Below are positions 24,312 to 46,829 of a DNA stretch of 64,000 nucleotides, piece by piece. The notes below the pieces were generated by a model that saw nothing but the letters and a program-made list of their open reading frames with translations, did not search any database and was not told where the DNA came from. The stretch's first letter is position 1; each line of letters starts with the position of its first letter. The stretch is from sequence record LC597490.1; one strand, 5' to 3'. A program made the position numbers and the translations under genes.

Positions 24312-24323
24312 TTAACTCACTCC

Positions 24324-25612: not shown

Positions 25613-28600
25613 TTATTGCGTTTTATCTGCACCGTAATTATCAAGGTCTTGGTAGCTTGTTGTGAACTTACGGTCATCTGCATCTGTGTCAGCCATGAAG
25701 TTCATGAAGCCACCGACTGCTGCGAAGAATCCATCACCAGAACCATCGAAGCCTAGACCTTGCAAGAAGTTGTCCATTGAACCTTGTTTCGTATCACCGA
25801 CAACCATACCTTTGTGACCGTTAATACCAGCTGTAAACTCTTTACCTTGGTGCATTAATGGCATCATCAGTACAGCTTGGTTCGTAGTCTTACTTCGTCT
25901 CCACTTCTCGAATAAACTTTCAACTAACCATCCAGCAGTTAAACTGAATATCCATCCAAGTGGTGTTCCTTTCGAAGCAAATGTTCCAACGCCTTTAATG
26001 AACTTAGAACTTGATTTCATATCTTTCATTGCACCAGGTAATTTAGAAGCAGTTAGAAGTGAACGGGCCGCTAATTTCTTAGTGCCTTTCATAATCTTAC
26101 CATCCTTACCAGGTACTCCTCCAGATTTTAACCATTCCTGCGCCTTTTTGGAAACATTATCTGCGGCGGTTTTTACACGTTCCCAAGCCTGAGCCTCATT
26201 CTTACCTTCTTTACCTTTTGCTTTATAGTAAGAATCCAGTGCCTTCTTCAGTTCATTTGTTTCAGGAGTATCAGGAAGTGTATCCACAAGGTTCTTCATA
26301 CTCTTCTCGACTATCCATCCACCAGCTGCTTTACCTTTGGTCATGAGCGTTCGACCTGTTGCACTATTAGCGAACTTACGAGTTGCCGCATTACCAGCAC
26401 GTAATCCCATAACAGTTGCTCCAGCTAACATTCCGACAGATGCCCACCAGTTAGAATGAGCCAACATTGCTTTGTCATCAATAACAACAACAGCATCAGG
26501 AGTAACACTTGAAATGAATCCAGTCTCATGAGAGAAGTGATGAACAACAGCTTCAACTCCGATGTTACCGTTCATATCAGAAACAGAGTCTGACATATAA
26601 ATCATGTCATGTGGTTTCAGTGTTGGCGTTCCAATGATTGTGATACGTCCTTTATACATATCCTTCATGTAATCACGTACTGTACTTGCAGAGTAGTAAA
26701 GAGCTTGCTTCTCTGTAGTAAACATATCCCAACCTGGAATTGTACGAGAGATTAATGGAAGGTCAACAACTGCTGTACGTTGCATTGAGAAGTCAATGTC
26801 GTAGTCTGCATAAACTGGAGGTGTTGGTTTCCCGCCGTAGTTACCAACAACAATTGTATACATACCATCAGAAGATGCTTTGATTTGGTTAGATATAATA
26901 TCCATTCCATCGTCAATATAATGAAGCTGACAATAAGGACGTCTATATTCTGTATCAAGCGTACGATCCCATGACTTCGTTTTCTCATTATAAGCATACG
27001 TACTGTCGTAACGATATGCCATGTTCCAATAAGGTTTTCCGAAGAACAAGGTAGAACGAGTTTCGAATGGATGTACTGCCGCAATATAATCTGGGAAACA
27101 GTAAGAAATGTTTGTAGCTACATCCCAAATTGTTTGATTATATAGAGGCATTAAGATATTGTCCTCGTCACCGCCTTGGAATTTAAGAATGAACCCATCC
27201 CACTTCATAGGAATACGAGTACCATCTTCATAAATCCATTGGCTAAATGTTTGCAGTCCATTTGCAGAGTAAATGTTTTGAGCAGCTTCTCCATAGTTTT
27301 CATTGAAGAACTTGAAGTTTGCATCTGGTGTTCTATCACCTGGACGACCAAAGTGAGCTACCCCTAATGGATTGTCACGGAAGAATCTGTTTTCGCTGGC
27401 TACGTTGATTACGTCTTTTGCCCATGAACCTTTAGATGTTAAGAGCTTACAGATAATGTCTCGTGGTTCTTGAGCATTAAATAGTTTCGCTGTTTTATCA
27501 TCAGGGTCACCAGAGATAACACTTGTTAATTCCAGCCCGTCACCTTGAGCAACGAGTGTAATAACATCGTTTGTATCCATCTCTGTAATCTTACCGTTGA
27601 ATACAGTTGGTAATCTTCGTACAGATGAACCATAACCCATTCGTAAATGGATACGAGCACCAACTTCTAACATCATACTGTTTAATAAGTCTGAGCGAGA
27701 ATCTAAGATTGCATCACTTGGATTATCCAGTACTAAATTATCCCAGAAGCTATATGCAAAGCTGTCGTACATTTCACTTGTTGGTCGTGCCGTTAAGTTA
27801 CTGTATACGTTTGTCATGGAGATAACAGCTGTGTCAGCTACTTGTTTTCTACTTCTATGAACATCAATAGATTGGATTGCGTTGAATCCGTAGAAGTTAT
27901 CCCATAAACGATATGAACCCATCCAACGTCCTTCATCAATAATGAAGAATTGGAACGTAGGGAATGCTCGACATAAGCGACCTCTCATATCATAAGACAG
28001 CATATTGTGAGCCATTTGAGAGAATGCTTCTTCAGGAGATTGCTTGAATAATAGACGGTTGTATTCTTCATCTTTGATGTCTTCTACTTTTTGTTGGTCT
28101 TCATAGTTCTTCGTTTCTTGAGACTTACCATCTCCGAACCAATTGTCCCATAAAGAACCATCTCCACCGAATGTTTTACTCCATCCTAAAGCTAGAAGGT
28201 CAGTTGCCCATTTACCAATCAACATGTTTGTATTACCGCCAGTTGGAATCTTAACTTGGTCTAGGTAACCTTTTAATTTTCCATCCTTATGCATCTTCAT
28301 GTATGACTCATAAATTTTCTTAACTTCACTAGTAGACTTTTTCTTAATCTCACTGAGTAATGCCTTCGCCTTTTCCTTACCAAGAACATCTTCCAGAATC
28401 TTAGAATCCTCTAAGTCCTTGATTAATGCATCCTTATCACTTGTTGCAACGTTAACAGTATGAGAAGACTTACCATCAACTAACTTCATAATGTCAGGGT
28501 CTACAACTTGTCGTGGAGAACGGTAACGGTTCTTATCTTCATTGTATAAAGACTTCCACACACTCATGATAGAAGGGAATGCACCTTCCTTAATACTATC

Positions 28601-31600
28601 TTTCTTCAGCTCACCAATATAGAAAGCGGATAACATGTAATCCCAAGCACGATATTCAAATTCTTTCTCTTTTGAATCTCTAGCTTTTACATAGAATTTA
28701 TAAATGTCTTCTACGATTACTTTCAATTGGTACTTCCAATCCCATAGGAATCGTTGTGCATCATCTACACTAGTTGCGAAGTTTGGAATATCCACTTTAC
28801 CAAGACCACCGAATGTACCGTTTACATAAGGTTTACTCATAGAGTCGAAACCATTCCACTTACTTTGATGATGGAAGAATGCTTTTAGATAGTTAGCAAT
28901 ACGAGCACGAGTTGTTGGCATAAACTCTTTGTAATACATACCGTTTGTTTTATCTTGTCCCATTAATGCAATCAGGTTGTCGGTAGGTTTCTTACCTTCA
29001 CGATATTGCGTATACAATTTAAGATGGTCTTCTGGGTCAGCATACGTAAGTTTTGTATGTCCACCAGTAGCCTTATTCTTATCGTTATATACATTGTTGT
29101 TTTTAACCCAGCGTGCATCAATTAATGCATACAATTCCTTGTAGAAATCAACTGGTTTTGGAACAACATTCTGTCTCCATTTTGTAAAGTCCGCTTCTGA
29201 TTCACCATAACCCCATGTCTTCCACTTATCTAAAGGAGGAGGCGTGTCGATATTCTTCTTATCTTTCAACCAAGTAGCAACTTCAGCATTTGGTTTCCCA
29301 GTACCTTTTGCACCACCAGTAGAGTCAGTCGCATTCTCAGCAGCCTTTTCAGAGTTCGCGCCCTTATTATCTTCAGCCCAGTTAAAGACATATGGAACAT
29401 AAGGAGTCTTTTTCTCAAGCGCTTCGATAACATGCATGTTCTCTTTATCTACATCCATTGGGTCAGTAGAAGTAATACTAGAAGACATGTGTACACCAGA
29501 GGAGTCACTGAACTTCATCTCTTTACGTTGTTCTAACTGCTTCTTAATTTCTCCACGGAACGTCCATTTTGTAGAAGCATAGAAGTCAGGGTCAACGTAG
29601 ATACCGCCTGGTTTGTTTTTGTACTCCTTAATACCAGCTCCAGTTTTCTCAATGACATCATTAAGCTCTTTGTAAGTTGGTAATTCTAAGTCAGGATATA
29701 CTTCCATTTGGTCCATCTTGTACTCAATGATTGCATCTTGTAATTTGTAATCTACAGTAGATGAATGCAATTGGTCACGGTCTGTACCATTGACTGCGCT
29801 CATACCTTTTAGTTCTTCTTGACGACGTTGTGTTTTATTGAAAGCAACTAATACCATCTCACCTTGGAATCGACCAGGGAATCCAGGGACAGTATTTACG
29901 TTAAGTGTTTCAATCATTACACTTCTAACACCGAATAGTTTCAATAATTGATTCTCTATTCCTAAGAATCCAGAAGAGATACCTACACGATAATGACGAG
30001 CGAACTCATCAATCTTATCTACTAAGTTACGTAGCTTTAATACGCCATCTTCTGTTAACTCAAGGTCTAGTTTTACGGCAACATCTTGAGAACCAAGGAA
30101 CTGCATCGTAGGTGATTCACCAGTACGAGTTTGAGCAGAACTGAATATGTTTTCGTACATAACTTGCATAGAAGTAACTAACATGTCCTTCTCAGGAATT
30201 GTGTAATCAATCATGGATAGTTTAGATTCTGTTACATATACAATATCACTTAACTTGTTGTAACGATCAATCTCAGTCATTGCCATTTGTTCAGCACGGC
30301 GACCTCTTTCAACGATTCCTTTTAATGCACCTAAAGAAGTTTCTGTTACATAGAAATAACCAACGGCTTCTTTTTCAGACTTAGGTTTTACCCATAAGTT
30401 TCTATGCTTCTTCAGTTCTTCACCATTTGGAATTGACCATAAAAAGATTTTGAATGTATCCTTCTTACGGAAGTAGCCTGGAAGTTCTGAACCTTCTTCT
30501 GGGTCTACTGGTAATTTACCACGCATAATGTCATGGACTTCACTATCATGAGGAGCGAAGAATTCCGTATCATCAAATACAGCTCTTGCACTTCTATTGT
30601 TATACATATCTTGGAACACTGGATGTCCTTCCACTAAGTCATCAGGGTCTTTGATATCGCCATTCTTTTTATGACGTTGGTACTTATCATATTGCTCAAG
30701 AAGGAGTGAAGCTTTCTTACCATCGGCAATAACTTTACCTAGCTCACTTTTCTTTGCATCAATTTCCATTCTCATAACATTGATTGGCTTCATTTCACGA
30801 AGAGCAATGATTGCTTCTGCTCGTTGTTCCAATTCAGCTTCATCAGCATGAGAGAAGGAAATCTTATTTGTTAATTGTCCAGAGATAGGCTCTAGGAAAG
30901 TATGAGCTTCGTTAGCTGGTTTTGTTAAGCTACGTTGGTAGTACCATCTCATTAATGGATAGTTGATTGCGTCATGCAAACTAACTTCTTGAGGCATGTA
31001 GGCTTCAGAGTTAAACTTCGCTAATGTTAAGTTAGCCATGATAGAGTGAGGGAATCCTGGGACTGTCTCTACTGATAAGTTCATTAATGCTACATCATGA
31101 ATATCTAAAGTTGTATTAATGTATACATTATCAATAGGAAGGAAAGGCATCTTTTGGAACTGAGCAATCAGCTGGCGTAAACCATCCATTGTATATTCCA
31201 TACCTTCTGGAGTCTTCCACGGTGTACCATTAATCGCTTCTAAGTCGTGGAAATATAATTGTAGATTAATGGATGTACTTGCATATCCAGTTTTCGTTAA
31301 GATACTTCCTTTTGTACGAAGTGTTTTAATACGTTCAGTGTGAGAAGTTCTATTTACTTGGATACCAAGTGGAGGAACTGTAAGCAATACATCACCAATA
31401 CGAACACGATGTTGGTTTTGGAGGTCGCCCATTTTCTCGATTCTATCATCTAATGGTTCTAAGAAATCAATTGAGTTATCAAACACATCATCATATTTAA
31501 TTTTAACTTCCGATAAGTCTGATTTCTCTTCATTGTTCTTATTGCTTTCTTTGAAGTAGTCGTCTAGTTTTTCACCGACTGTTCCACTATCAGGCATGTC

Positions 31601-32575
31601 TTTTAGTAGTCCAAGGTCTTTGTACCATTTCATAACATCAAAGCGAATATAACCTTCATCATTTACGAACTTCTCATATGGCATACCAAGTGGAGCAGGT
31701 GCATATAAAGCAGAAGGTTTCGCAAGTAAGCTTTTATTCATGTTGATTGCGCTAGGTATTTTGTCACCCTTTAATACATCAGATTTATTTGCATGTGTTT
31801 TGTAAACAACAGCAACATAACGACCATACACATCTTTACGTGGTTCATGGTTTTCGATTCTATCTACATCGACAACAACGGCTCCAGAGCCACTCAACAT
31901 GTTATTCATATAGTCTCTTGCTTCTTCACCGATCTTGAAGGCTTGTTCTTTTGTTACTTTATAACGAGACATGTACCCAGCATTACGAGTTGTACCCGAT
32001 GCTTCACCATGGTCTTCTGTCTCAGGTGCTTGTACACCTACATAACGAATGTTTATACGTTCGCCTTTTTTAACATGCAGTCCAATCCATTTACCAGTAT
32101 CATATACAACCCCAGAGATTGTATCACCATCTTTTACTTTTACATCTTCTAATACAATGATACCTTCTGATACTGGTGTTTCTTCTGGAGGAGCTGCGAA
32201 TGCACGAGCCATTAATCTTGGAGCAAAAGCAGGTTCAGGTTTTTTATCTTCTCCTATTTGCCCTCTTTCATGGAATGGAGAATTGGATTCAACAGGAAGC
32301 TTTCTTACTACATGAGCATGTAACTCTATATTAGAAATTTTTCCTCCAAGCTTTCTTGTGAAACCATGACTTCCTTCAGTTTTATTGAAGGTAACGGAGA
32401 TAGGATATGCTTTATTTTTTTCAGCTACTGTTGTTAAGTATTCTGACAATCTGTTTCCAATAGAAACTTCATTATATCTAAAACGAACTCGTTCTCCATC
32501 TACATCCAGAGTAAGAAGCCAGAATGACTCTGGCTTCTCTTTCTGAACAGATAGGAGTCTCATTTCATACAACAT
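25613..32575 (-). CDS. Giant baseplate hub protein (2320 aa) with an N-terminal thermonuclease domain, tube-like domains, a degenerate lysozyme-like domain, a hub domain and hydrophobic C-terminal helices
   Basis: DGDT (D149)...RYVGVQAPE...DVYGRYVAVVY (SNase fold); AIQSIDVHRSRKQVADTAVISMTN...GARIHLRMGYG...VFNGKITEM...LVAQGDG (gp27/gpD-like hub); position upstream of the spike and wedge genes. Confidence 0.8.
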   Translation of the reverse strand: MLYEMRLLSVQKEKPESFWLLTLDVDGERVRFRYNEVSIGNRLSEYLTTVAEKNKAYPISVTFNKTEGSHGFTRKLGGKISNIELHAHVVRKLPVESNSPFHERGQIGEDKKPEPAFAPRLMARAFAAPPEETPVSEGIIVLEDVKVKDGDTISGVVYDTGKWIGLHVKKGERINIRYVGVQAPETEDHGEASGTTRNAGYMSRYKVTKEQAFKIGEEARDYMNNMLSGSGAVVVDVDRIENHEPRKDVYGRYVAVVYKTHANKSDVLKGDKIPSAINMNKSLLAKPSALYAPAPLGMPYEKFVNDEGYIRFDVMKWYKDLGLLKDMPDSGTVGEKLDDYFKESNKNNEEKSDLSEVKIKYDDVFDNSIDFLEPLDDRIEKMGDLQNQHRVRIGDVLLTVPPLGIQVNRTSHTERIKTLRTKGSILTKTGYASTSINLQLYFHDLEAINGTPWKTPEGMEYTMDGLRQLIAQFQKMPFLPIDNVYINTTLDIHDVALMNLSVETVPGFPHSIMANLTLAKFNSEAYMPQEVSLHDAINYPLMRWYYQRSLTKPANEAHTFLEPISGQLTNKISFSHADEAELEQRAEAIIALREMKPINVMRMEIDAKKSELGKVIADGKKASLLLEQYDKYQRHKKNGDIKDPDDLVEGHPVFQDMYNNRSARAVFDDTEFFAPHDSEVHDIMRGKLPVDPEEGSELPGYFRKKDTFKIFLWSIPNGEELKKHRNLWVKPKSEKEAVGYFYVTETSLGALKGIVERGRRAEQMAMTEIDRYNKLSDIVYVTESKLSMIDYTIPEKDMLVTSMQVMYENIFSSAQTRTGESPTMQFLGSQDVAVKLDLELTEDGVLKLRNLVDKIDEFARHYRVGISSGFLGIENQLLKLFGVRSVMIETLNVNTVPGFPGRFQGEMVLVAFNKTQRRQEELKGMSAVNGTDRDQLHSSTVDYKLQDAIIEYKMDQMEVYPDLELPTYKELNDVIEKTGAGIKEYKNKPGGIYVDPDFYASTKWTFRGEIKKQLEQRKEMKFSDSSGVHMSSSITSTDPMDVDKENMHVIEALEKKTPYVPYVFNWAEDNKGANSEKAAENATDSTGGAKGTGKPNAEVATWLKDKKNIDTPPPLDKWKTWGYGESEADFTKWRQNVVPKPVDFYKELYALIDARWVKNNNVYNDKNKATGGHTKLTYADPEDHLKLYTQYREGKKPTDNLIALMGQDKTNGMYYKEFMPTTRARIANYLKAFFHHQSKWNGFDSMSKPYVNGTFGGLGKVDIPNFATSVDDAQRFLWDWKYQLKVIVEDIYKFYVKARDSKEKEFEYRAWDYMLSAFYIGELKKDSIKEGAFPSIMSVWKSLYNEDKNRYRSPRQVVDPDIMKLVDGKSSHTVNVATSDKDALIKDLEDSKILEDVLGKEKAKALLSEIKKKSTSEVKKIYESYMKMHKDGKLKGYLDQVKIPTGGNTNMLIGKWATDLLALGWSKTFGGDGSLWDNWFGDGKSQETKNYEDQQKVEDIKDEEYNRLLFKQSPEEAFSQMAHNMLSYDMRGRLCRAFPTFQFFIIDEGRWMGSYRLWDNFYGFNAIQSIDVHRSRKQVADTAVISMTNVYSNLTARPTSEMYDSFAYSFWDNLVLDNPSDAILDSRSDLLNSMMLEVGARIHLRMGYGSSVRRLPTVFNGKITEMDTNDVITLVAQGDGLELTSVISGDPDDKTAKLFNAQEPRDIICKLLTSKGSWAKDVINVASENRFFRDNPLGVAHFGRPGDRTPDANFKFFNENYGEAAQNIYSANGLQTFSQWIYEDGTRIPMKWDGFILKFQGGDEDNILMPLYNQTIWDVATNISYCFPDYIAAVHPFETRSTLFFGKPYWNMAYRYDSTYAYNEKTKSWDRTLDTEYRRPYCQLHYIDDGMDIISNQIKASSDGMYTIVVGNYGGKPTPPVYADYDIDFSMQRTAVVDLPLISRTIPGWDMFTTEKQALYYSASTVRDYMKDMYKGRITIIGTPTLKPHDMIYMSDSVSDMNGNIGVEAVVHHFSHETGFISSVTPDAVVVIDDKAMLAHSNWWASVGMLAGATVMGLRAGNAATRKFANSATGRTLMTKGKAAGGWIVEKSMKNLVDTLPDTPETNELKKALDSYYKAKGKEGKNEAQAWERVKTAADNVSKKAQEWLKSGGVPGKDGKIMKGTKKLAARSLLTASKLPGAMKDMKSSSKFIKGVGTFASKGTPLGWIFSLTAGWLVESLFEKWRRSKTTNQAVLMMPLMHQGKEFTAGINGHKGMVVGDTKQGSMDNFLQGLGFDGSGDGFFAAVGGFMNFMADTDADDRKFTTSYQDLDNYGADKTQ

Positions 32576-32591: not shown

Positions 32592-35500
32592 TTAATACGT
32601 AAACCCTTTACCCATTACATTTGCAAATTGTGTTTGCATCCACTCATTGTCTAGCTTCTGAGTATTGTCATTTACGTTCATGTTCATGTTAAGTTGAGCG
32701 CTCGTTTGACGAGATAACTCTTCATGAACGAGTTTCGAAATATCTTGTTGAGACATTCCTTTTGCATCCTTCGCTCGAATCGAAATGTTGATGTTTTCAT
32801 TTGGTGTTACACGAGCAGTCGGGCCAGAAGATACTTGTACAGGAGGTGGCGGTGGTGGCGCCATATCAGTCTGCTCTTGGAATGCTTCTGGTGTTGGACC
32901 ACTTCTCATTAAAGCTGAAGCTGCCCACATTGCACCAAATCCAATTGCTCCTCCTATCATACCTGGTCCCATCTTATGTGCTAAACCAGACATCTTTTCA
33001 CTTACTGCTTCCGTTGCTCGAACAATACCTTTGTCTGCACCAACCATTTCTGTAAGAGTATTCTTACTTAGATGCGGTGTTTCAGTTATCGTATCAGCGA
33101 GAGAATCTTTTAATGCTCTATCTCTAAACGAGAATCGCTCAGAAATAAGGTTTTCGAAGTTCTCTACACCTTCATCATATATCTTTTTGAACTGAGGATT
33201 GTTTGCGGCGATGTTGTCTAAGTGAGGAGTTGGAACAGATTCATACTTACCACCAGCTACAATGTTAGAAACAATATCTGTATCTTTCGTACCACCAGAT
33301 TGCATACCCTTCAGATGAGGATTCTCAGTGAACGTGTTGCCAGACAATGAATACAGGTCTTGTAATTGGTCTAAGTGTGTATCCAAGCCATAATGGTTCA
33401 TACTTTCATTTGGGTTGCTTGTCTTGAAGATACCCAGTATGTCATTGGCTTTTCGAATCTTCTCTACACCAACAGAGTCAGGTCGGATAACCCCTTCTTT
33501 TAACATCTCAATTGCTTGGTAATGAGTTTGCATACGTTTTTCTACTTCACCCATTACGGCTTCAGCACCGTGATGCTCCATTACTTTAGCGGCATATTGA
33601 GACTCATCGTTTGTTAGCTGTTTACCCCAGCTCTTAACAATCTCTTCTGTTAAAGCACCAACACTAATTTTCTTAGAAGAAATGGAGTCCTGTGAAATCT
33701 TACTACTAAACTCCTCTAGGATATTCATAGCTTGGTAGGCTTCGTCTTGTGAGATTAAGCCTTTTTTAGCAAGAGCCTCATAAGTTGGATTCGTTAAAGT
33801 CTGCATACGTTGACGTAAGTTATCGAGTACCCCGATGTCAGCTTTACCAGTACGAGCTAGTAAACTTTCCATCTCATTTAGTCTAGTTGTTTTTGGACCC
33901 CAACCAGCTAACTCTCCATAATCTTGTGACCTTTGTATTTCTCGTTGCAGTTGCTCACCGACAGTTAGCTTCTCTGCATTGTAGTGCTTTAACTCATCTG
34001 CTGCCATTTCGACACCAGCTTGTTCATACAATGGAATACTTCCTTGTTGAACTTGTTGCATCTCTTTATGCACAGCACGAATGTCATCAACAGTATGTGT
34101 CTTACTTGCTTTATAGTGGTTAAATACAGCATTACCATTATCACCATCATGATCGGCTTTGAATACTTTTGCAGTACCAGCGCCAACATACATAGTGTTT
34201 GCTTCAATCGTATCATCCACAAGGTAACGAAGAACTCCGTTTGTTTGTTTATTGATAGTTGGATAACGGTTTGTAAATCCATATAAACCATTTGTTTTCG
34301 CAATTTCAAGTGCTTCTTCGCCCATACGTTCAGATTTAAACTGTTTCGCTAAAGATTCAAGACGAACTTTCTCGTCTCCTTTTGCTTTACCAGCTTGTGT
34401 CATACGCTCATTGTATTCTGTAAGAACAGCTTCATGACGTTTTGGAGCTAATGACTGAACGATATCGCCTTCTGCACCTGCAATCATACGACGCATTTGT
34501 TTCGGACCAATTAAGGCATCACCTTCAGCTAGTCCTTTCTCATGCATGTTAACCCCTTCAATATGGAAACGACCAGACATATCCATCTTCGCAGAGTACT
34601 TATCTAGAAGTGTTCCGCCATGAGAACCTGTCACCATATAGTTTAGGTATGACTTGTATGCATCTACTGATTTTTCAACAGCTTCCTTATTCTCTATTGT
34701 AGGAGCAGCTTGATATGCTTTAATGTTTCTCCAGATACCAAGGGAACGCTTGTCTACTTCATTCGCCATCTCCAGTGCTTCTGGGCCAGTACCGATTTGC
34801 ATTGTACCAGGAGACATCAAACGAACATACTTGTCTTTAAACTGATGTTCACTATTGCTTGGTAATTCAAGTAAGAATGTGCCGCCGTTTTTCTTCATGA
34901 GACTTCCGACAGTTTCTTCTACACCTTCACCAAGTCCCTCAATCTGTAACTGTAGGCTTCTTGGGTCAGCAAGTGTCATTGCATAGTTTCCAAGTTTACC
35001 TTTCGTCATCTCAGGGTCAGTAGCAACATTGAATTGTGGGTCACGGAATGCATGTTGAGAAATCTCTAAGTGACCATCCTTCATAACAGCTGTGTGCGTA
35101 CCATCTGGGTCTAAGTCCGTCATGATGTTTCCACCTGTACGGATAACAATGTCACCTTCTTGTACAACACCATTCTTTTGAAGAGTTGTATTTTGGTGGT
35201 CATTGATTGCTCGTAAGATACCAGAAGTTTCTTCAGCTAATGTCATTTCCTTACTGCTGTTTTGGATAGCAGAACGAGATGAGATTTGTTGACGAACAAA
35301 CTTACCAATCGTATGGTCTTTACGCCCTAAGATTTGGTCTGTACGATTTAGAATCGCTTCTTGTTCTTTATATGTCCAACGAACCAATCCCTCTTTGCCT
35401 GTCTCAGATACACCCATTTGGTCTTGCCATTTATGGAGGTCAGCTACTCGAAGTGTTAAGTTAACATTCTTTTCCTGACGATTTATTGGAGCTGTATAAT

Positions 35501-38500
35501 TAATAACGCCAGCTTTAGCCGCAAGTTCTTCTAACATTTGAGATGATTGTTTTACGAAGTCATACTCTTGTTGTGCTCCATATACAGGACCAGCGATTCG
35601 TCCATGTTCTGAATTCAATACGAGCTTACCAACAGTTAAGTTGCTTCCTTGTACAGGTTCAAGCTTCATAGCGATATCGCCATCAGGTATTTGGAAGATA
35701 CGTTGTGTCATATCTTTAATATCTGATACGTACTTTTTAACAGCTTCATTTTTAAAGTCCATTTCAGAGTTCGTGATTAGTCGGTTGGCTTCATCTACAG
35801 CTAATCGGACTTGACCTTCAATCTCTGTACCATGCATACCTTTACTGATATCACTTACAGTTACGATTGCTTTTGCATCACCTACACCAAGTGCTTCAAA
35901 GATATCTCTATCGAAGAAGTTTGTTGTAATACGATGGTTGGCATCCGTTAAGAACTTACGTCCATTTTCTGTTTTCTCAATCATTTGAGTTTGCAGTTTA
36001 CGAGTCTCTGGGTCATAACCTACGACATGGAATCCATCGCCCCATGCTTTTTCAGTTTGATATTGTGTATTCTGACCGATACTTACCTGACCAACTGTTA
36101 ATTTGCCATGGTCAGCTTTGCCTGGATTGTTAACACGACCACCAAGAATTGTTTCCAATTCAGTAGCGTTCTTCATAACATCTCCTTCAAGTCTCCACCC
36201 ACCATTGTCAGTTCGGACTGCACGGAATCCATCCTTCGCTAAATCATTGTTCTCAGCTTGTTTAAAGAAGTTTGCAATGTCACTGTGTAATTCAAATCCA
36301 CGTTGCAGGGTAAAGTTCTTCTCACGCTTCGTATCAAACACACTTTGTAATGACTTGTCGATGATAGACATACCCTCGAATGTAGTTAGATTCTTTTCGA
36401 ATCCTTGACCATATTTACGAACTAGGTCGGCATATGCATCAGGACTACTCTTTCTAAACTCATCCATACGATCTTTAATATCCATATCAGTTAATTCAAC
36501 AGCTTGAACGTTTAGTCCAGTTAATTCTTTCTGCTGAATAACAGAACCATCAGGCATACGAAGTGGAGCACTCAAAGCTTCAGATGCAGTTGTTGTAGCA
36601 GAAGTTTGAATCATACGCTCAATCTCAGCGCTAGTATATCCTTTCGCTTGTAGTCGGCTACGAATTTCTCTTTCTTCTAATGGAATATAGTTACGAGTTT
36701 TATTCATTTGCTCACGGGCTAAAATATTATAATGACCAAATGCCTGATAAGCTTGTGATGTTTCTCGTGTACCATAGATACCATTCAGTACTTGCTCACC
36801 ACTTACGTTACCAGCATTTAAATACATATTCTTTTCTCTAGATGCGAACTCTTGAATCGTACTATGGAATGCACGTTGTTCTCTCATTCCTAAATTCTCG
36901 AAGAAGGAAGTATATGATTGAGCAGACTTGTCTTTGATTTGTTGGTATTTGTTTTTTACGCCTAGTTCTTTTTCAAAACCATAGCGTTGGTCATACCATG
37001 AATACCATTCTTCAGCCCATCCACTTACATCAATCTTACTTCTAGCTGCACGTTGAGCTATCTGAGAACGCTTAGAATCATGCTTAGTAAGTTCTTTTGC
37101 ATTTGTGTATGGATTATTATGTGAGAACTTTTCTGTCGCTTCACGGGCTTGTCTACGTAGTCTAGAGTGAGCCTCTTGTTCGTTGCCTTTACGGATTAGC
37201 TCTTTTGTAGAACTAGAACGACGGACAGCACCATCTACTAATTGTTCTAATGGTGTACCAAGTATATCCTTACCATTCATTCTCATTGCTTTTAAATAAC
37301 CTGTCTTAGTAGAACCAGGCATTGTTACGTTCATGTTTTCATCCAATAATGGAATTGGAACAGAAGCAACTTTCGCATGTTCAATGATTTGGTTCGGCTG
37401 AAGACCCATTACTTCTTTCATTACAGTTTCCTGCATAACAGCAAGCATGTATGTCTTCTTGTGACCATCGTAGATTAATTGTGTAGCCATGCCATCTCCA
37501 GAGTAGGAGTTGATTAATTGTTTTACTACATCTTCAGCTTTCATCGTTTGAACGCCACGAGCAGTGTTACCACCACTGATTTGCATTAAACCATTTAAAG
37601 CTTCGTCATGTGTTTGTAATGCCTTTTGAAATTTCGCATCACTTAAATCAAGTGTCTTACCTTGAGACTTATGAGAAGCTCGCCCACTATCAATCCCTCG
37701 TCCGATAATATCTTCTAAGATAGCTGGGTTTTGGTATGCTTCCACTAAAGGTTTACGGATAGAACTTACATCTTTGATGTCTAAGTTGTGGTTAGCATAA
37801 GAAGAGTTATGAGAATACTCAGCTCTCATCATACGAGCCATACTTTCAATAACCATGTAAGGACTTTCCCCGTGTTGTAATTCACTAACCTGACGTAGTA
37901 ATTGAGATTTCTCAGATGATGTTAAGCCAGAAGCACCTGGTCTACGAACATGATTCACAACATCCTTCAAACGTTTCTTCACAATACCAATATCTACGCC
38001 ACCATTCTTACTGATGTTCTCTTTAATATCTAATCCCTTTGTAATGTAAGAACGGATATTACGAGCTGCGGTTGCATCAGTAGAAAGATCAATACGATGA
38101 GTTGTTTCACCAGGTAATTGTAATTCTAAGAATCCTTTACCATTTGGCATTCTCACTCGTGTTTCACCGCTACCATATCTCTCATCTAATTGTTTAGCGA
38201 TATTACTTAAAGCAACGTTCTGACTGAATGGTGTAAATCCATTTGAACCTGGAAGGTTTGCATCGAGTCTTGCCATTGCAGTTTGCCATACCTTCTTCTC
38301 TTGTGTTAAACGTTTCTCCATAACAAGAAGGTCACGATATTGAGAGTTTGGTAAACCAGTAGGTGTTCCGCCAACAGTACGTTGAACATTAGGATGGTTC
38401 TGTACATAATCAGCAATATCTGATTTACGGATTTCACCACGTTTGATTTTCTCTCTCCCCTCATTTAATGCATCAAGGGCAGCGTACATACGCTCAAGCA

Positions 38501-40139
38501 TCCAACGTCCTCCACCAGATTCAGTTGTAGAGAACATCTTATCGTAAGTACGTCTTGCACGGTCTAATCCATATGCAGTTCTATTACCCGCATTAGGGTT
38601 TGCTAATTGAGGAACTTCTTCAGAAGGTTTAAATACTTGGTGGAATACACTTTGAAGGTCAGTCTCACTGTCTCGTGAAATGAAGTGGAATAAATCTGTC
38701 TCTAAGTTACGAAGTAAGATACCACTTTGTTTATTATCAGAGTTCTTTAATTTACCGCTGAATGTTTTTACAACCTCATACTCTGATTCTTTAGAGATTG
38801 GGTTTACGTTTCCTTTATAAGCAGGAACCAATTGTTTCTTTTCTGGGTCCCATCGGAATACACCATCATTTGCTCCGCTTTCATATCCTGGCAAACCTGT
38901 CATTGAGAATACTTTATCTCCAGCCTTAATGGAATTACTATTCCAAGTACCATTCATACGATTACCTGCATCAGCATTTACGATGCCTTCTACATTCAAC
39001 TTATCTAAGAATACTTTATTGGCAACATCTACAGTTAAGTCTGTATCCTGTAAAGCCATGTGAGTTGCTTGTGCGATTTCACCAGTCATGCCGTAAAAGT
39101 TAGCTAGTGTTTGGTTTCGTAAACCATGCTTAGAACTTAGGTCAGCAAATAAAGAATTGGCAATAGATAATGTATCGAATGAGTCTGCTTTCTGAATATC
39201 AGAAGCTAAACGAGTTAAAGCCATTCTAGTCTTTCTATCATGCTTAGGTATGCTAGGAACTAGCTGGTCTTTAATATAATCACGCATGAAAGGAATATCA
39301 TATGTGTTAATATTTTGCCCACCTAGTTTTAATTCTTTTCCATTACGTAATGTTTTTAAGAATTCTCTAGCTACTACATGAGGTTCTGTACCATGCTTCA
39401 CAACATTCTCAAATCCACGTTTTGCTGCTTTAATTTGGTCATGTGTAAATAAGGTACCTTTCATAGCTTTTTGATCTTTATTCTGTTTTAAGATAGTAGT
39501 CATATCACCATCTTTACGGAAGTATCCATTACCAAATGCATCATCTGCTCCGTATAAGATTAAGTCATTCACGGTACGTCTTTCATCATCCGTTAAGTTG
39601 ATACCTGTAATATGAATCCCCTTTAATTTCTCAAAGATATCCATTACATGCTTTTGTTCTTTCTCACCTGGTTTTACTAATAAAGAAAGAGCCTTATCTG
39701 TTTTGCTGAATTGAAGTTTACCTGCGGCATCTCTTTCTACTTTTGTTTGACGGAAACCAAACTCTAAAGGTGAGTACCATTCTCCGCCATGAGTACCAAT
39801 ATTCTCAATATCGAAGAACGTGAAGATATCTCCAGCCTTCATATTTTGAATCGTTTGGATGGATTTTTGAGCATGGGATTTCGTGCTTGTACTTGGGATA
39901 TGGATAGACTTAAACATATTCATTTGAGAATCAGCAGCGTTTGTTAATATCTTACCGTTGTAAGTAGCCGCTTTGAATAACTCATCAGCACCTGTTGTTC
40001 TTGGCTTCTTTTCTCGTTGAGACATTTGAGCCACAATGTACGATGCTTCAGGGTTTGTATTTTGTTTAATATAAGTACCATGAAGGGGGTCGTATTTAAA
40101 CTGACCCCCATTTTTAATTCCCCCTTTATTTTCTTCCAT
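32592..40139 (-). CDS. Putative virion-associated single-chain two-barrel RNA polymerase fused to an N-terminal DEDDh 3'-5' exonuclease (2515 aa), encoded in the tape-measure position
   Basis: Beta-prime-like NRYPT (R1958) and ADHDGD (D1996/D1998/D2000; nt 34140-34157). Beta-like TFEG (E1255), GRK-x7-R (K1395/R1403) and SKGMHG (M1435). Exonuclease motifs FDIE (D110/E112), GQNINTYD (D281) and HMALQD (H360/D365). Confidence 0.85.
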   Translation of the reverse strand: MEENKGGIKNGGQFKYDPLHGTYIKQNTNPEASYIVAQMSQREKKPRTTGADELFKAATYNGKILTNAADSQMNMFKSIHIPSTSTKSHAQKSIQTIQNMKAGDIFTFFDIENIGTHGGEWYSPLEFGFRQTKVERDAAGKLQFSKTDKALSLLVKPGEKEQKHVMDIFEKLKGIHITGINLTDDERRTVNDLILYGADDAFGNGYFRKDGDMTTILKQNKDQKAMKGTLFTHDQIKAAKRGFENVVKHGTEPHVVAREFLKTLRNGKELKLGGQNINTYDIPFMRDYIKDQLVPSIPKHDRKTRMALTRLASDIQKADSFDTLSIANSLFADLSSKHGLRNQTLANFYGMTGEIAQATHMALQDTDLTVDVANKVFLDKLNVEGIVNADAGNRMNGTWNSNSIKAGDKVFSMTGLPGYESGANDGVFRWDPEKKQLVPAYKGNVNPISKESEYEVVKTFSGKLKNSDNKQSGILLRNLETDLFHFISRDSETDLQSVFHQVFKPSEEVPQLANPNAGNRTAYGLDRARRTYDKMFSTTESGGGRWMLERMYAALDALNEGREKIKRGEIRKSDIADYVQNHPNVQRTVGGTPTGLPNSQYRDLLVMEKRLTQEKKVWQTAMARLDANLPGSNGFTPFSQNVALSNIAKQLDERYGSGETRVRMPNGKGFLELQLPGETTHRIDLSTDATAARNIRSYITKGLDIKENISKNGGVDIGIVKKRLKDVVNHVRRPGASGLTSSEKSQLLRQVSELQHGESPYMVIESMARMMRAEYSHNSSYANHNLDIKDVSSIRKPLVEAYQNPAILEDIIGRGIDSGRASHKSQGKTLDLSDAKFQKALQTHDEALNGLMQISGGNTARGVQTMKAEDVVKQLINSYSGDGMATQLIYDGHKKTYMLAVMQETVMKEVMGLQPNQIIEHAKVASVPIPLLDENMNVTMPGSTKTGYLKAMRMNGKDILGTPLEQLVDGAVRRSSSTKELIRKGNEQEAHSRLRRQAREATEKFSHNNPYTNAKELTKHDSKRSQIAQRAARSKIDVSGWAEEWYSWYDQRYGFEKELGVKNKYQQIKDKSAQSYTSFFENLGMREQRAFHSTIQEFASREKNMYLNAGNVSGEQVLNGIYGTRETSQAYQAFGHYNILAREQMNKTRNYIPLEEREIRSRLQAKGYTSAEIERMIQTSATTTASEALSAPLRMPDGSVIQQKELTGLNVQAVELTDMDIKDRMDEFRKSSPDAYADLVRKYGQGFEKNLTTFEGMSIIDKSLQSVFDTKREKNFTLQRGFELHSDIANFFKQAENNDLAKDGFRAVRTDNGGWRLEGDVMKNATELETILGGRVNNPGKADHGKLTVGQVSIGQNTQYQTEKAWGDGFHVVGYDPETRKLQTQMIEKTENGRKFLTDANHRITTNFFDRDIFEALGVGDAKAIVTVSDISKGMHGTEIEGQVRLAVDEANRLITNSEMDFKNEAVKKYVSDIKDMTQRIFQIPDGDIAMKLEPVQGSNLTVGKLVLNSEHGRIAGPVYGAQQEYDFVKQSSQMLEELAAKAGVINYTAPINRQEKNVNLTLRVADLHKWQDQMGVSETGKEGLVRWTYKEQEAILNRTDQILGRKDHTIGKFVRQQISSRSAIQNSSKEMTLAEETSGILRAINDHQNTTLQKNGVVQEGDIVIRTGGNIMTDLDPDGTHTAVMKDGHLEISQHAFRDPQFNVATDPEMTKGKLGNYAMTLADPRSLQLQIEGLGEGVEETVGSLMKKNGGTFLLELPSNSEHQFKDKYVRLMSPGTMQIGTGPEALEMANEVDKRSLGIWRNIKAYQAAPTIENKEAVEKSVDAYKSYLNYMVTGSHGGTLLDKYSAKMDMSGRFHIEGVNMHEKGLAEGDALIGPKQMRRMIAGAEGDIVQSLAPKRHEAVLTEYNERMTQAGKAKGDEKVRLESLAKQFKSERMGEEALEIAKTNGLYGFTNRYPTINKQTNGVLRYLVDDTIEANTMYVGAGTAKVFKADHDGDNGNAVFNHYKASKTHTVDDIRAVHKEMQQVQQGSIPLYEQAGVEMAADELKHYNAEKLTVGEQLQREIQRSQDYGELAGWGPKTTRLNEMESLLARTGKADIGVLDNLRQRMQTLTNPTYEALAKKGLISQDEAYQAMNILEEFSSKISQDSISSKKISVGALTEEIVKSWGKQLTNDESQYAAKVMEHHGAEAVMGEVEKRMQTHYQAIEMLKEGVIRPDSVGVEKIRKANDILGIFKTSNPNESMNHYGLDTHLDQLQDLYSLSGNTFTENPHLKGMQSGGTKDTDIVSNIVAGGKYESVPTPHLDNIAANNPQFKKIYDEGVENFENLISERFSFRDRALKDSLADTITETPHLSKNTLTEMVGADKGIVRATEAVSEKMSGLAHKMGPGMIGGAIGFGAMWAASALMRSGPTPEAFQEQTDMAPPPPPPVQVSSGPTARVTPNENINISIRAKDAKGMSQQDISKLVHEELSRQTSAQLNMNMNVNDNTQKLDNEWMQTQFANVMGKGFTY

Positions 40140-40151
40140 CCCAATTCCTCC

Positions 40152-43100
40152 TTAGCTAAATACTTTTGTCCAGTTCGTGTTTAGTTCCTGGATAATTTCT
40201 GCGCTTCTATCTTTCATCATGTCGAAACCGACATTAATCATATTCTCATCTTTAGATGGTGAACGTTGAACGGTTACCTGTACATCATCAAGACCTGCTC
40301 CTCGAAGGATTTTTTCGATACGAGATGAGTTGATAAGGTCACCCATTAAACGTGGTTGCATGTCGATTGCATCTACTCCAGAAGCATCTGCTCTCGTTTC
40401 ATCACTACCCCAGAATCCAAACTCTGTAAGTTCCATACCTTCATTGCGAACAACCTTTAACTTAATGTCATTCAATGCGGTATCTGCACGCCAACCTTCC
40501 CAGTTTTCACTAGGTAAGTAATGTGTCTTGAAATAAGATTCATTACTCTCTACTTCATCCATCTTCATTCCCCACTTAGCTTGGAAGAAGCGACGTTCAT
40601 TTTCAGGAACAAGTCGAAGGATTTCCTCCCTTTCATCAGGAGCAGCCTTCATGAATTCTGCAAAGTACTCTCTATCCTTTTTCGGTAGAGAACGGAAGAT
40701 TTTTGTCATGTCACCATTTGGGTCAGCCCCGAATAATGTTGACTCATATTCCGCTTTATATTGAAGAGCTAGTAATGTATGTGGCCCGATGTCCACACTA
40801 CTTCTATCCTCACCAATTGTTTTCAGATTCTCACGGATACGTTTTAACTGGAACTCCGTAAGCTCATCATCACCATAACCCATTTTTTTCTGCATTGCCA
40901 ATTGTTTTTTGTAAAGTTCTAGAGTTTTACGAGACTGTTTATTTTTCTTACCACGCTTGCTGTTTTCGTCTAGAAGTTCTTTTAAATCTACACCTTCTGT
41001 ACGTTTCGCTTCTTCCGCAGCCTTCTCATATAAACCTTTAAACTTCATGTATTTCAAACGGTCAAAGTACTCGTTAACTTCCCTTTCCTTCTTACGTCTT
41101 TCTGGTAACCAAACTTCACTATTGCCAGGAGTATGCTCACTTAGTACTCGTAGAGCCGCAGCCCCACCACCTACTAATGCACCAATCCATTTACCGTAGT
41201 ACTTACCTTTACCTCGTCCAGCTAACCAACCAATACCATAACCTTGAGCAGATGCGATTAATGGATTACGAGAAGCCATTGTTTCAATCATAGGTTGTAA
41301 CCATCCAGAGATAGGTTCTTCCCATGGTCTCCATGCTTTACCATATACTTCAGTACGTTTGTATTGCTCTAATGGAGAACGAACTTGTAAGAACTTATCA
41401 GCGATAGGTCCGATGATTGGTAAGCTTGGTAATAAGTCATGGCTTAGAAACTCCCACGTTTTACCGACAGTAATTTGATCGTTACTGAATAAAGCTTGTG
41501 TAGCAGTCGCACTACCATCATCTTTCACACTTACGTTGTTCTCTCCGCCGAATCCCATGAAACCACCGAAGGAGCGATTCGCTAACATGTAGTTGACGTT
41601 CTGACCTTTTTGAGTCATGTAGAATGGCATACCTTCTTCACTGTTACCAGCGTATACAACAGCACGCATTGTATTCATCATGTCATCACGGACACGGAAT
41701 AGTGGGTCGGCATCTAATCCTACTCGAATCTTCGCACCTTCATAAACGAACTGACGCAATAAAGCCTGAGCTTCTTCATCATCTTTCTTGATAGACACAC
41801 CAGCTAGTTTAATAGGGTTGTTCGGGAATTCTTCTGTTAAGAATGTATTCTGGTCAAGAATCTTCGTAACAGTTACATCTTGCATATCAATGTCAGCATT
41901 TGTGAATCGTTTATCAAAGAATTGGTATTTCTTTTTACGCTCACGGACTTGCGTCATTACTTCTTGGTACTCATCTTTCATATCATCTGTTAAACGACCA
42001 TCTTGGTTCATTTGAGAAACAACACGTTTCCACATACGATATTGGTCAGAGTAAGGAGCAACGTCAGCTAAGATACGGAATCTATCGAATGCACCGTATT
42101 TGCTTCCATCTTCTTGAGAGAACTCATCTGGATGTAGTTTGTATAATCTTTCATACGCTTCACCAGGAAGTCTCATTTCCCCTTTACTTACTTTTACATA
42201 AGGGTCACCATATTTAAATGGTAAGAAGTATTCAGCACCAGGCATCCAGTCTGGCATTTCATTTCTAATTGGATTGTAGTAATTTTTATTCGGGTCACGA
42301 GGAATGTAACGACGGAAAATCTCGGAGAATCCGCCACCAACCATATCAGCTCCACCTAGTTCCATATCCCAGAAACTACGTGCCATACTATCCATACGAG
42401 AACTTGGCTCAAGTGTTAAACCACGTCCACCCTCTTGGAATCCAGATAATGCTTTTGTACCGAAACCGTAGATACCAAGAACCTCAGATGCAGAGTAGAA
42501 CATATCACGAGCTATACCAGATGGATTGCCAATCTCACCGATATCAGCTAAGTCTGCTAATGCTTCAGGGTCACGTAAGCTTTCTAATTGAGTTAATGGT
42601 CTCATCTTAGATTGGTTAACAGCTGCTTGACCTCTCATGGTGATACGCTGGTTTATTGCAGTTAAGGCTGCACTAGAGTAATCTCCAGCTCCAACCATTC
42701 GTTCAGTACCTTCGATAGCAACGCCACCTTCAGCACTTGCTCCACCACCAAGACCAATCGCACCACCGCCACCAGAACCATAACCTTCTTCATATCCACC
42801 ATCACCAGAAGGCATGTCTTCATATACTTGAAGTCCACCAGCTGGCATTAATTGAATACTAGCACCTTCACTATAAGCATCGAATCGTCTACTAGATGCA
42901 GCGATTACTTCATCTTGATATCGTTCATGCTGTTCTTGTAAGTCTGCTCTGACAGTACGAGGAGAAATGATTCGTCCAATTGTATTATCAGCAAGAGGAC
43001 CAACAATAGGGAAGTCGGAAAGGATTGTTCCACCTTTGATTGGATACGGTCTGTCATCTTCGTGTTTCTTTTCTAGATAACTATGACCATTTAACATGTA

Positions 43101-46100: not shown

Positions 46101-46229
46101 CTTTATTCCTTTACCGATTGCTCGTCTGTATTTATAACCTAGTGCAGCACCGCCTACTATACCTGCAAGCTCTAAAGGACTGGAACCTTCTTGCTCTGGT
46201 AAGGGCTGGCGTCCAGTTTGTTCTGCCAT
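40152..46229 (-). CDS. Tape-measure-like / ejection protein (2025 aa) with hydrophobic segments and a degenerate thermonuclease-fold domain
   Basis: Directly follows the chaperone pair; helical composition; Gly/Ala hydrophobic stretches (LAGIVGGAALGY; GYGIGWLAG...WIGALVGGGAAAL); VTKILDQNTF...IKLAGVS...MRAVVY...NVNYMLAN resembles SNase without its catalytic residues. Confidence 0.65.
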   Translation of the reverse strand: MAEQTGRQPLPEQEGSSPLELAGIVGGAALGYKYRRAIGKGIKVVTHESSMAMRGAAIQAAKMSARNTPVGNAMSEVGSYLKSLDHALDQKNPLFHMRNKDRFDNRFTRTFKDLQEERMRMARTPLGGRPTKIQNEYLSMMKGLQKERKDFVRATQFEETMKRLSSVLPERMKEGGLENVLRQKRDDLFFEAPSLKKVDELLKMHSRENAKKNNIGNALDFVDELERKKTAETVYQTMVTVKKDKNVKEIAKKNYKEYRDIRVKAFKDDHSIDKNGKWMEAAQRRGLKPLTLKETLNRGLIDQDSADFLVPLEKASKMSPKNLANNFRIHMKSDKELGDLHVDPGLFVDKSGNVVDMRNSIEGGFNFLDIVKDNVQLPYLRFNPLDLAHYSSVKTIREAPKSYVLKRGDIDPFLQGARTVQHPAAHNRDAAAGTLADDHIFVGGNVYRMNDMSKVDEGVYLADRRFGVFSRMPASMANLHVRNYDDIGPVKNFFGFGLQETESSFSRIKSMFTKFKDPDWEINQVRQMMKGQYKDLDEVEGIYKNIYSSFNEKTTNFSSTTVDFLNPHVKKAYGNVDIDLTKLNTTEEIMGAVGRLRQAIGSPEFDGKISKGNTALAEQLDEMWTKFSRSPQGFLKNQRISSDNGAILPEFASALETGETELVGILDDAKRLIQQHSIHQVNMTTEGTSRLVRNAILEGDLDKNALSEVRNMEVLSKMRTWWKDVYRNRNTYGDDALEEFAGLMKGEDSVFGQAIHESIKDFNPLTSTGPGMRPPNYFGPTTGYGIMRDAKGIGWAKENYEQLVEDGSSSVSAFLNSTKEVLKQPFAGRNNLGDVTTATTFFYYGIERMDNALAKVGLGLAQKDKGSMQSILVNQLGKRILLPYIGYKELQYLDDMTGDTVSDSLADTYVNMHGDLAGVKETLGINRIGKELTAPFAGAGQLGELPFLKAFDFLTLGAFSDFRSEEEVNKYYESGEDAVRKGRYWGLGSNTPWAGGKIERWEPNWYRKAKSDYEYTDTLYGSANDYWANTWIPTLSNPLAPLTYMLNGHSYLEKKHEDDRPYPIKGGTILSDFPIVGPLADNTIGRIISPRTVRADLQEQHERYQDEVIAASSRRFDAYSEGASIQLMPAGGLQVYEDMPSGDGGYEEGYGSGGGGAIGLGGGASAEGGVAIEGTERMVGAGDYSSAALTAINQRITMRGQAAVNQSKMRPLTQLESLRDPEALADLADIGEIGNPSGIARDMFYSASEVLGIYGFGTKALSGFQEGGRGLTLEPSSRMDSMARSFWDMELGGADMVGGGFSEIFRRYIPRDPNKNYYNPIRNEMPDWMPGAEYFLPFKYGDPYVKVSKGEMRLPGEAYERLYKLHPDEFSQEDGSKYGAFDRFRILADVAPYSDQYRMWKRVVSQMNQDGRLTDDMKDEYQEVMTQVRERKKKYQFFDKRFTNADIDMQDVTVTKILDQNTFLTEEFPNNPIKLAGVSIKKDDEEAQALLRQFVYEGAKIRVGLDADPLFRVRDDMMNTMRAVVYAGNSEEGMPFYMTQKGQNVNYMLANRSFGGFMGFGGENNVSVKDDGSATATQALFSNDQITVGKTWEFLSHDLLPSLPIIGPIADKFLQVRSPLEQYKRTEVYGKAWRPWEEPISGWLQPMIETMASRNPLIASAQGYGIGWLAGRGKGKYYGKWIGALVGGGAAALRVLSEHTPGNSEVWLPERRKKEREVNEYFDRLKYMKFKGLYEKAAEEAKRTEGVDLKELLDENSKRGKKNKQSRKTLELYKKQLAMQKKMGYGDDELTEFQLKRIRENLKTIGEDRSSVDIGPHTLLALQYKAEYESTLFGADPNGDMTKIFRSLPKKDREYFAEFMKAAPDEREEILRLVPENERRFFQAKWGMKMDEVESNESYFKTHYLPSENWEGWRADTALNDIKLKVVRNEGMELTEFGFWGSDETRADASGVDAIDMQPRLMGDLINSSRIEKILRGAGLDDVQVTVQRSPSKDENMINVGFDMMKDRSAEIIQELNTNWTKVFS

Positions 46230-46775: not shown

Positions 46776-46787
46776 GTCCTCCCAAAT

Positions 46788-46814
46788 AAAAAAGAGAGGG
46801 GATATCCCCCTCTC
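46788..46814 (-). terminator. Intrinsic terminator between the two chaperone genes
   Basis: GAGAGGGG-GATAT-CCCCTCTC then TTTTTT. Confidence 0.85.
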
Positions 46815-46829
46815 CCCTTATTATATTTC

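Follow-up and report, generated by a model that had tools for sequence, protein, structure and literature searches.

A giant protein in the tape-measure slot of Bacillus phage vB_BceM_WH1 contains a predicted single-chain two-barrel RNA polymerase-like core

Bacillus phage vB_BceM_WH1 (WH1; LC597490.1, 229,829 bp, host Bacillus cereus) encodes among its tail genes a giant protein, gp095, which is labelled only as a "virion structural protein" in its database record. The window analyzed here, a stretch of 64,000 nucleotides that matches ~62–126 kb of the phage genome at 100% identity, contains the gp095 gene on its minus strand at positions 32592..40139 as one intact open reading frame (ORF) of 2,515 amino acids (LC597490.1 94592-102139, 100% tblastn match). 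The original prediction for this DNA, made by reading the letters, placed a hidden single-chain two-barrel RNA polymerase (RNAP) in the tape-measure slot at window positions 33600-36500, corresponding to gp095 residues 1214-2180. Our data support a single-chain two-barrel RNAP-like core in this unannotated giant, based on conserved residues, a structure model of the beta' type, matches to the Pfam family RNA_pol_Rpb1_2, and the position of the gene. We consider it very likely that gp095 folds as a two-barrel polymerase and that its active site is intact, and we infer that the core is most probably a DNA-dependent RNAP.

The seven motifs on which the prediction had been built each occur once in gp095, at the residue numbers originally assigned to them. 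TTFEGMSII (residues 1252-1260), NGRKFLTDANHR (1392-1403), and ISKGMHGTEIE (1431-1441) lie in a beta/Rpb2-like barrel region (approximately residues 1250-1445; 35805..36392, minus strand), which includes an acid at position 1255 and the basic pair K1395/R1403 and is beta-rich in our structure model. NRYPT (1957-1961) and ADHDGD (1995-2000) lie in a beta'/Rpb1-like catalytic barrel (approximately residues 1850-2010; 34110..34592, minus strand), where they supply R1958-x-P1960 and D1996-x-D1998-G-D2000. The remaining two, IGVLDN (2102-2107) and QDSISSKK (2150-2157), belong to long conserved helices that follow the catalytic loop (approximately residues 2017-2160; 33660..34091, minus strand) and contain the invariant residues G2103, N2107, Q2150, and K2156; these helices are candidates for bridge-helix or trigger-type elements.

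The two-barrel polymerase superfamily has been defined by eight invariant residues (Ruprich-Robert and Thuriaux, PMC2919709), which in yeast are R446, P448, and the three aspartates of the DxDGD loop in Rpb1 together with D837, K979, and K987 in Rpb2. All eight have counterparts in gp095 (acid 1255, K1395, R/K1403, R1958, P1960, D1996, D1998, and D2000), with the beta-like barrel first in the chain and the beta'-like barrel second. The claim that these hallmark elements appear in the right order and spacing was borne out by comparison with the yeast enzyme (PMC2919709): the acid precedes the first basic residue by 140 positions in gp095 versus 142 in Rpb2, the basic pair is spaced by 8 residues in both, and the distance from the arginine to the first aspartate is 38 in gp095 versus 33 in Rpb1.

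A lone D.DGD is weak evidence, since ~0.04 occurrences are expected by chance in a protein of gp095's length and composition, and it is conservation that carries the argument. A word-indexed search recovered 9 relatives of gp095, and an exhaustive profile search recovered 83 sequences, each representing a cluster at 50% identity and 56 having E<1e-30, so that the family comprises at least 83 clusters at this identity level. Nearly all members are 2,200–2,600 amino acids long, with the matching region in the same place. With 88 family representatives aligned to the profile of the family, we tallied the residues in each column. D1996, D1998, G1999, and D2000 were each present in 84/84 representatives, and conservation of these aspartates among homologues was one of the checks by which the prediction had proposed to be judged. 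R1958 and P1960 were both kept in 83/83, K1395 in 71/71, and the acid (D or E) at position 1255 in 68/68, while position 1403 was R or K in 68 of 70. The helices after the catalytic loop were similarly constrained, with G2103 in 74/74 and both Q2150 and K2156 in 70/70. This strictness stands against an identity to gp095 of only ~16–30% among the aligned representatives.

The spacing within the first barrel also bears on which branch of the superfamily gp095 resembles. In QDE-1, a solved RNA-dependent RNA polymerase (RdRP)-type enzyme, the corresponding residues are D709, R738, and K743, a far more compact arrangement of 29 + 5 (PMC2919709) compared to 140 + 8 in gp095. Judged by its residue pattern, the beta-like barrel of gp095 resembles the cellular type rather than the YonO/RdRP type. 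The prediction had seen in the segment after the catalytic loop an affinity to the RdRP/YonO/crAss-type branch, and this part was not supported. The family PF05183 matched neither gp095 nor any of nine relatives, and we rejected the YonO/RdRP branch because hhalign comparisons with orf99, the YonO-like polymerase of Bacillus phage 0305phi8-36, and with an alignment of 22 orf99-like proteins, all of them PF05183, found no similarity (probability 0.4% for the alignment). Like gp095, YonO of SPbeta and orf99 come from Bacillus phages, combine both barrels in a single chain, and have RxP and DxDGD motifs. They differ from it not only in the first-barrel spacing but in size and genomic setting, since YonO-like proteins are ~800–1,270 amino acids long and are encoded among non-structural genes, in contrast to the 2,515 residues of gp095 and its place in a tail block.

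Sequence-profile searches pointed to the same region of the protein. Searched alone against Pfam, gp095 yielded only a sub-threshold match to RNA_pol_Rpb1_2 (E 0.09, residues 1941-2013), and this was the sole recurrent Pfam family among relatives, matching 5 of 9 members scanned singly. A profile of 41 family sequences searched against PDB sequences recovered phiKZ gp55 (E 0.021), the AR9 beta' subunit (E 0.2), and Rpb1 homologues; all of these matches span the RxP...DxDGD segment, and the phiKZ gp55 alignment has both motifs in register.

Structure modelling was another of the checks that had been proposed, and its outcome favours the prediction. The polymerase module (residues 1130-2260; 33360..36752, minus strand) was modelled by AlphaFold2 from the same number of sequences, 41, with a mean predicted local distance difference test score (pLDDT) of 85.6 and a predicted template modelling score (pTM) of 0.80. 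This model replaced an earlier one from 9 sequences (pLDDT 63, pTM 0.33), for which Foldseek returned nothing significant. Searched against the PDB, the new model gave 52 matches at E<=1e-3, and the best 50 were all RNAP subunits of the beta'/Rpb1 type (E 6e-5 to 1e-3, ~260–340 columns, probability 1.00), including bacterial beta', cyanobacterial and plastid subunits, the non-virion RNAP (nvRNAP) of phage AR9, and human Pol I. Neither phi14:2 gp66 (6VR4) nor QDE-1 (2J7N) nor P23-45 gp96 was among these best 50.

An independent model of gp095 in BFVD (A0A7R7G2L5) agrees with ours (template modelling score, TM, 0.83). The next BFVD matches were a "minor tail protein" of an uncultured siphovirus (A0A8S5SD80_1; E 5e-18, 1,070 columns, 12% identity) and an uncharacterized protein of Acinetobacter phage ME3 (E 7e-7, 915 columns), followed further down by jumbo-phage beta' subunits and by giant-virus subunits of the RPB1 and RPB2 types. 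Given these fold matches in PDB and BFVD, we regard the beta'-type fold of the catalytic barrel as established at the level of the model. The beta-like barrel may share the corresponding fold, given its residue pattern, its secondary structure, and weak matches to viral "subunit beta" proteins of the RPB2 type (E 5e-3 and 1.6e-2).

These results contradict the idea that the resemblance is a product of chance or a decayed relic without function. Such a reading could draw on the fact that searches with sequence alone stayed below curated thresholds, but a relic would hardly keep its catalytic residues invariant in 84/84 representatives, nor would a chance likeness be expected to give a confident model with significant fold matches to RNAPs only. 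We consider it extremely improbable.

Toward the N-terminus, gp095 contains a second putative enzyme, which the original prediction did not mention. A region resembling DEDDh 3'-5' exonucleases (approximately residues 95-375; 39015..39857, minus strand) has the complete signature of this group, with DxE in Exo I, D in Exo II, and HxxxxD in Exo III. The residues concerned (D110, E112, D281, H360, and D365) are invariant in the full-length representatives (66-67/66-67). Pfam returned no match for this region of gp095. Solved DEDDh exonucleases were recovered with the family profile (E 8e-4 to 5e-3), and in these alignments the Exo II and Exo III motifs are in register.

The presence of this domain raises the question of what the two-barrel core makes. 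The enzyme may not be an early-gene transcriptase at all and may instead, together with the exonuclease, make or edit primers, copy RNA from RNA, or synthesize DNA in the manner of archaeal PolD. In every full-length member the core is joined to an invariant 3'-5' exonuclease, a combination that proofreading DNA polymerases typically show; RNA-dependent polymerases and DNA polymerases both occur among two-barrel enzymes (PMC2919709, PMC7824862); and phage sigma factors could already redirect the host RNAP. However, all of the best structural matches are to beta' subunits of DNA-dependent RNAPs, and the combination of RxP, DxDGD, and the Rpb2-type spacing of acid and basic residues is an RNAP signature. 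WH1 moreover has its own DNA polymerase III genes, and there is no PF05183 signal in gp095. We therefore view a product other than early transcripts as unlikely, though the best placed of the alternatives we considered. It is rather doubtful, and a separate matter, whether the exonuclease and the two-barrel polymerase form a functional pair in every family member. Under that same doubtful proposal, the pair might be a virion-delivered RNAP with an exonucleolytic editing or processing domain or, by analogy with PolD and its exonuclease, an enzyme making primers or DNA. If the pairing is real, it would represent a type of enzyme without a described example among bacterial viruses.

The genomic position of gp095 also bears on its role. 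On the coding strand, the order of genes is sheath, tube-region genes, gp098, gp097, gp096, gp095, gp094, cell-wall hydrolases, and baseplate J. The tail-lumen gene block is opened by gp097 and gp098 (46245..47312, minus strand), two tail-assembly chaperonin genes in an arrangement that has been described for 0305phi8-36 (PMC2147016). The upstream neighbour gp096 (2,025 amino acids; 40152..46229, minus strand) is a homologue of 0305phi8-36 ORF145, a virion protein by mass spectrometry, and the downstream neighbour gp094 (2,320 amino acids; 25613..32575, minus strand) is a homologue of ORF147, a gp27-like baseplate hub. Between ORF145 and ORF147 of that phage lies ORF146 (2,537 amino acids), a "hypothetical tape measure protein" that was likewise found in virions by mass spectrometry and whose assignment was based mainly on tail length and position (Hardies et al., PMC2147016). 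Thus gp095, lying between the ORF145 and hub homologues and one gene from the chaperonins, occupies exactly the slot of ORF146, and "tape-measure slot" is correct as a statement of position. Relatives on metagenomic contigs and in Bacillus phage KLEB27-3 are set in this trio of giant genes as well, and relatives also conserve the order of chaperonins, ORF145 homologue, gp095, and hub homologue.

The sequence similarity between gp095 and ORF146 is confined to the last ~60 residues of each, and ORF146 has no DxDxD; on these grounds it was rejected as a member of the gp095 family. The aligned part belongs to the C-terminal module of gp095 (residues 2380-2515; 32595..33002, minus strand), which comprises a Gly/Ala-rich hydrophobic stretch (2393-2411), a proline run, and the conserved tail. 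This tail is the only part of gp095 common to ORF146 and to the C-terminal piece of the slot gene of Moorella phage MTATph1.

Several further features were observed in and around this slot. In MTATph1, the slot gene (L009:9174-16530, running from the ORF145-like gene to the hub) is split once by an inserted transposase gene, and its pieces still weakly resemble two parts of the gp095 family, the N-terminal domain and the C-terminal tail. In KLEB27-3 (vB_BauM_KLEB27-3, L004:7623-14776), the gp096 homologue consists of two ORFs of 1,340 and 677 amino acids, with a small ORF between them, that jointly span gp096. The hub homologue gp094 contains an N-terminal domain of the staphylococcal nuclease type (approximately residues 145-264; Pfam SNase, E 1.4e-5; NCBIfam EcnA-like, E 5e-7) and also matches a long lysin-type PHROG; since this domain is part of a hub homologue, the nuclease would sit at the tail tip beside the polymerase protein. 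Downstream, gp092 and gp093 (23010-25598, minus strand) have labels that differ from their domain matches: gp093 is labelled an N-acetylmuramoyl-L-alanine amidase and has an SLT lytic transglycosylase as its sole Pfam match, and gp092 is labelled "hypothetical" and matches NlpC/P60 peptidases.

Given this setting, gp095 might be first of all a tape measure or tail-lumen plug, whose polymerase-like core binds or pulls DNA during entry and makes no functional transcripts. Its slot, its similarity in length to ORF146 (2,515 versus 2,537 amino acids), and the shared C-terminal tail would all suit such a protein, and genome entry driven by a polymerase has been considered for 0305phi8-36 (PMC2147016). 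The strict conservation of catalytic residues in a deep family nevertheless points to chemistry rather than mere binding, and in 0305phi8-36 the protein of this slot functions with no polymerase module, which makes a plug of this sort quite improbable to us. A different possibility is that gp095 never enters the particle and is a non-virion polymerase whose gene lies among those of the tail by coincidence; we found no proteomic data for WH1, and its structural label may have been transferred from neighbours. Against this, the gp095 gene runs in the same direction as the tail genes and is closely packed among them. Only 12 nucleotides separate it from gp096, and its Shine-Dalgarno sequence (AAGGAGG; 40147..40153, minus strand), 7 nucleotides upstream of the ATG, overlaps the gp096 stop codon as in a tight operon. 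We detected no promoter or terminator signal above chance in the interior of the tail-gene block. The slot position is also kept in distant relatives, the C-terminal tail is common to a virion protein proven by mass spectrometry, and it is hard to see what task a non-virion polymerase expressed late would have. We judge an unpackaged gp095 to be very improbable.

We favour, as the more probable account overall and with reasonable rather than strong confidence, a polymerase packaged in the virion that occupies the tape-measure slot and acts as an early transcriptase. Packaging, RNA synthesis, template, and timing are the parts of this account that we infer. In this model, gp095 would be made late together with tail proteins and built into the virion, with its C-terminal tail docking at the hub end, and at infection it would exit the particle together with the DNA. 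D1996, D1998, and D2000, along with the acid at 1255, would hold two Mg2+ ions, and K1395, R1403, and R1958 would hold the incoming nucleoside triphosphate and the 3' end of the RNA, so that, as we propose, the two-barrel core could transcribe the first phage genes without host RNAP. The invariant N-terminal exonuclease would travel with the polymerase. Later transcription might then fall to the host enzyme, redirected by two phage sigma factors.

A number of observations weigh against this account. WH1 has two sigma-factor genes and no annotated RNAP, and with these sigma factors the host polymerase would be usable; the phage thus has no obvious need for a polymerase of its own. A quick repeat scan of WH1 small-gene regions found no phage-specific promoter motif, showing only ribosome-binding sites and coding repeats. 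The presence of gp095 in virions is attested by database labels alone, those of WH1 and of the KLEB27-3 relative, which is labelled a "structural protein"; our literature search found no proteomics paper for either phage. Folded enzyme modules take up at least ~1,400 of the 2,515 residues, and a chain more than half filled with enzyme domains is a poor fit to a simple helical ruler in the tail tube. The tail ruler could be gp096 instead of gp095. A DEDDh exonuclease is also an unusual partner for an RNAP. As for the core itself, the evidence for the beta-like barrel comprises only the residue pattern, secondary structure, and weak RPB2 matches described above. No search reached a curated family threshold, the best RNA_pol_Rpb1_2 match among family members (E 3.8e-4) falling below the gathering score, and gp095 as a single sequence matched nothing in PHROGs, NCBIfam, or PDB sequences.

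Other genes that might supply a transcriptase were sought in WH1 and related phages. A six-frame scan of WH1 covering 1-50 and 62-209 kb (50-62 and 209-230 kb lay outside it) showed no further large ORF with a polymerase-type DxDGD. An unnamed WH1 protein of 822 amino acids, considered as a second polymerase, proved to have only a Rho_N domain. Elsewhere in the genome, another "virion structural protein", gp211 (~178.7-179.7 kb; L005:18750-19733), contains five tandem copies of a 171-nucleotide coding repeat. 0305phi8-36 encodes orf99 (PF05183) as a separate YonO-like polymerase, and its slot protein ORF146 is without DxDxD; tblastn with orf99 found no counterpart in WH1, Edson, KLEB27-3, ME3, or MTATph1. 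Because 0305phi8-36 has orf99 and no DxDxD in the slot, and the other five phages are without orf99, the distributions of slot polymerase and orf99 look complementary in this small sample.

Among characterized systems, the closest parallel in architecture is gp96 of Thermus phage P23-45, a virion RNAP fused to a tape measure, whose transcription of the first genes does not depend on the host enzyme (PMC10770324). The original prediction cited gp96 as a precedent, and as far as the placement of a polymerase core in a tape-measure-slot protein is concerned, the parallel stands. Both are giant proteins of this slot with a single-chain two-barrel core and a DxDGD loop, and both have tail-protein annotations and a hydrophobic C-terminal part. 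The parallel does not extend to homology, as we detected none between gp96 and gp095, and the gp96 chain was absent from the PDB sequence and fold matches listed. The two also differ in that gp96 belongs to a Thermus siphophage and gp095 to a Firmicutes myophage, and in that the polymerase is N-terminal in gp96 and mid-chain in gp095 (approximately residues 1250-2160). In addition, gp095 has an extra DEDDh exonuclease and no metallopeptidase, and no second (non-virion) polymerase gene was found in the parts of WH1 that were scanned.

The crAss-like phage protein phi14:2 gp66, also cited as a precedent, is similarly a virion-type giant of more than 2,000 amino acids with both barrels in one chain and giants as neighbours, and it reportedly carries out early transcription independently of the host enzyme. 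It differs from gp095 in lacking a place among the best PDB fold matches mentioned earlier, and gp095 for its part lies in a tail gene block. The gp66 structure was also absent from our PDB sequence matches, and a crAss-like phage protein appeared in BFVD only at rank 39 (E 0.023, probability 0.44).

Multisubunit RNAPs, both bacterial and those of the jumbo phages AR9 and phiKZ, gave the strongest matches by structure and by profile (7s01_d, 7ogp_A, and bacterial beta') and share with gp095 the cellular-type barrel spacing. Unlike these enzymes, gp095 has both barrels in one tail-block polypeptide, with no separate subunits, and the superposition covers only ~280 residues. By its description, a comparable case is NCgl1702 of Corynebacterium glutamicum, a 2,169-residue beta::beta' fusion of presumed phage origin (PMC2919709): a giant single chain in which only the two-barrel residues are recognizable and the rest is unique. 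The N4 virion RNAP is likewise a giant virion-borne polymerase that is injected with the DNA for early transcription, but it has a T7-like right-handed fold (PMC7824862) and is therefore only analogous.

No member of the gp095 family has a functional name, and the family has no annotation in Pfam, PHROGs, or NCBIfam. It includes the Bacillus phages WH1, Edson, and KLEB27-3, with relatives on IMG/VR contigs of 29–264 kb and on Logan, ENA, and JGI contigs of up to 229 kb. Since a pattern-based scan of 185,579 species genomes (one per bacterial species) found no gp095 relative, the family looks, within the limits of such a scan, like one of large virulent phages rather than common prophages. Beyond the family, the siphovirus match A0A8S5SD80_1 raises the possibility that similar hidden modules exist in long-tailed non-contractile phages. 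In Acinetobacter phage vB_AbaM_ME3, the slot equivalent to that of gp095 holds ME3_36 (L011:6503-11314), a "hypothetical protein" of 1,603 amino acids with one RxP and a DxDxD 43 residues later. From its length, ME3_36 is very probably the ME3 protein matched in BFVD (E 7e-7), which suggests a much shorter and more divergent version of the gp095 module in a phage of a Gram-negative host.

Virion-delivered two-barrel RNAPs are, to our knowledge, known experimentally from only a few lineages, namely crAss-like phages, the phiKZ/AR9 jumbo phages, and one Thermus siphophage. Giant tail or virion proteins that conceal a virion polymerase are, as a kind, familiar. What is new here is the lineage, which has no detectable homology to known examples, together with the cellular-type spacing in one chain, the mid-chain position of the polymerase, and the fused exonuclease. 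Our literature search, which was incomplete, found no description of the gp095 family, only the work on P23-45 and general reviews, and an earlier description is possible.

The gp095 family adds an unrelated and sizeable set to the known two-barrel polymerases of virions, with structural cousins in Acinetobacter phage ME3 and in the "minor tail protein" of a gut siphovirus, and it deserves functional annotation. Its cellular-type spacing within a single chain bears on the kinship of simple and multisubunit two-barrel enzymes. The location of such an enzyme in the tape-measure slot of contractile-tailed jumbo phages suggests that phages have repeatedly arrived at positioning a polymerase where the DNA-delivery path has its tip, and that many giants annotated as "tape measure" or "structural" proteins may conceal enzymes.

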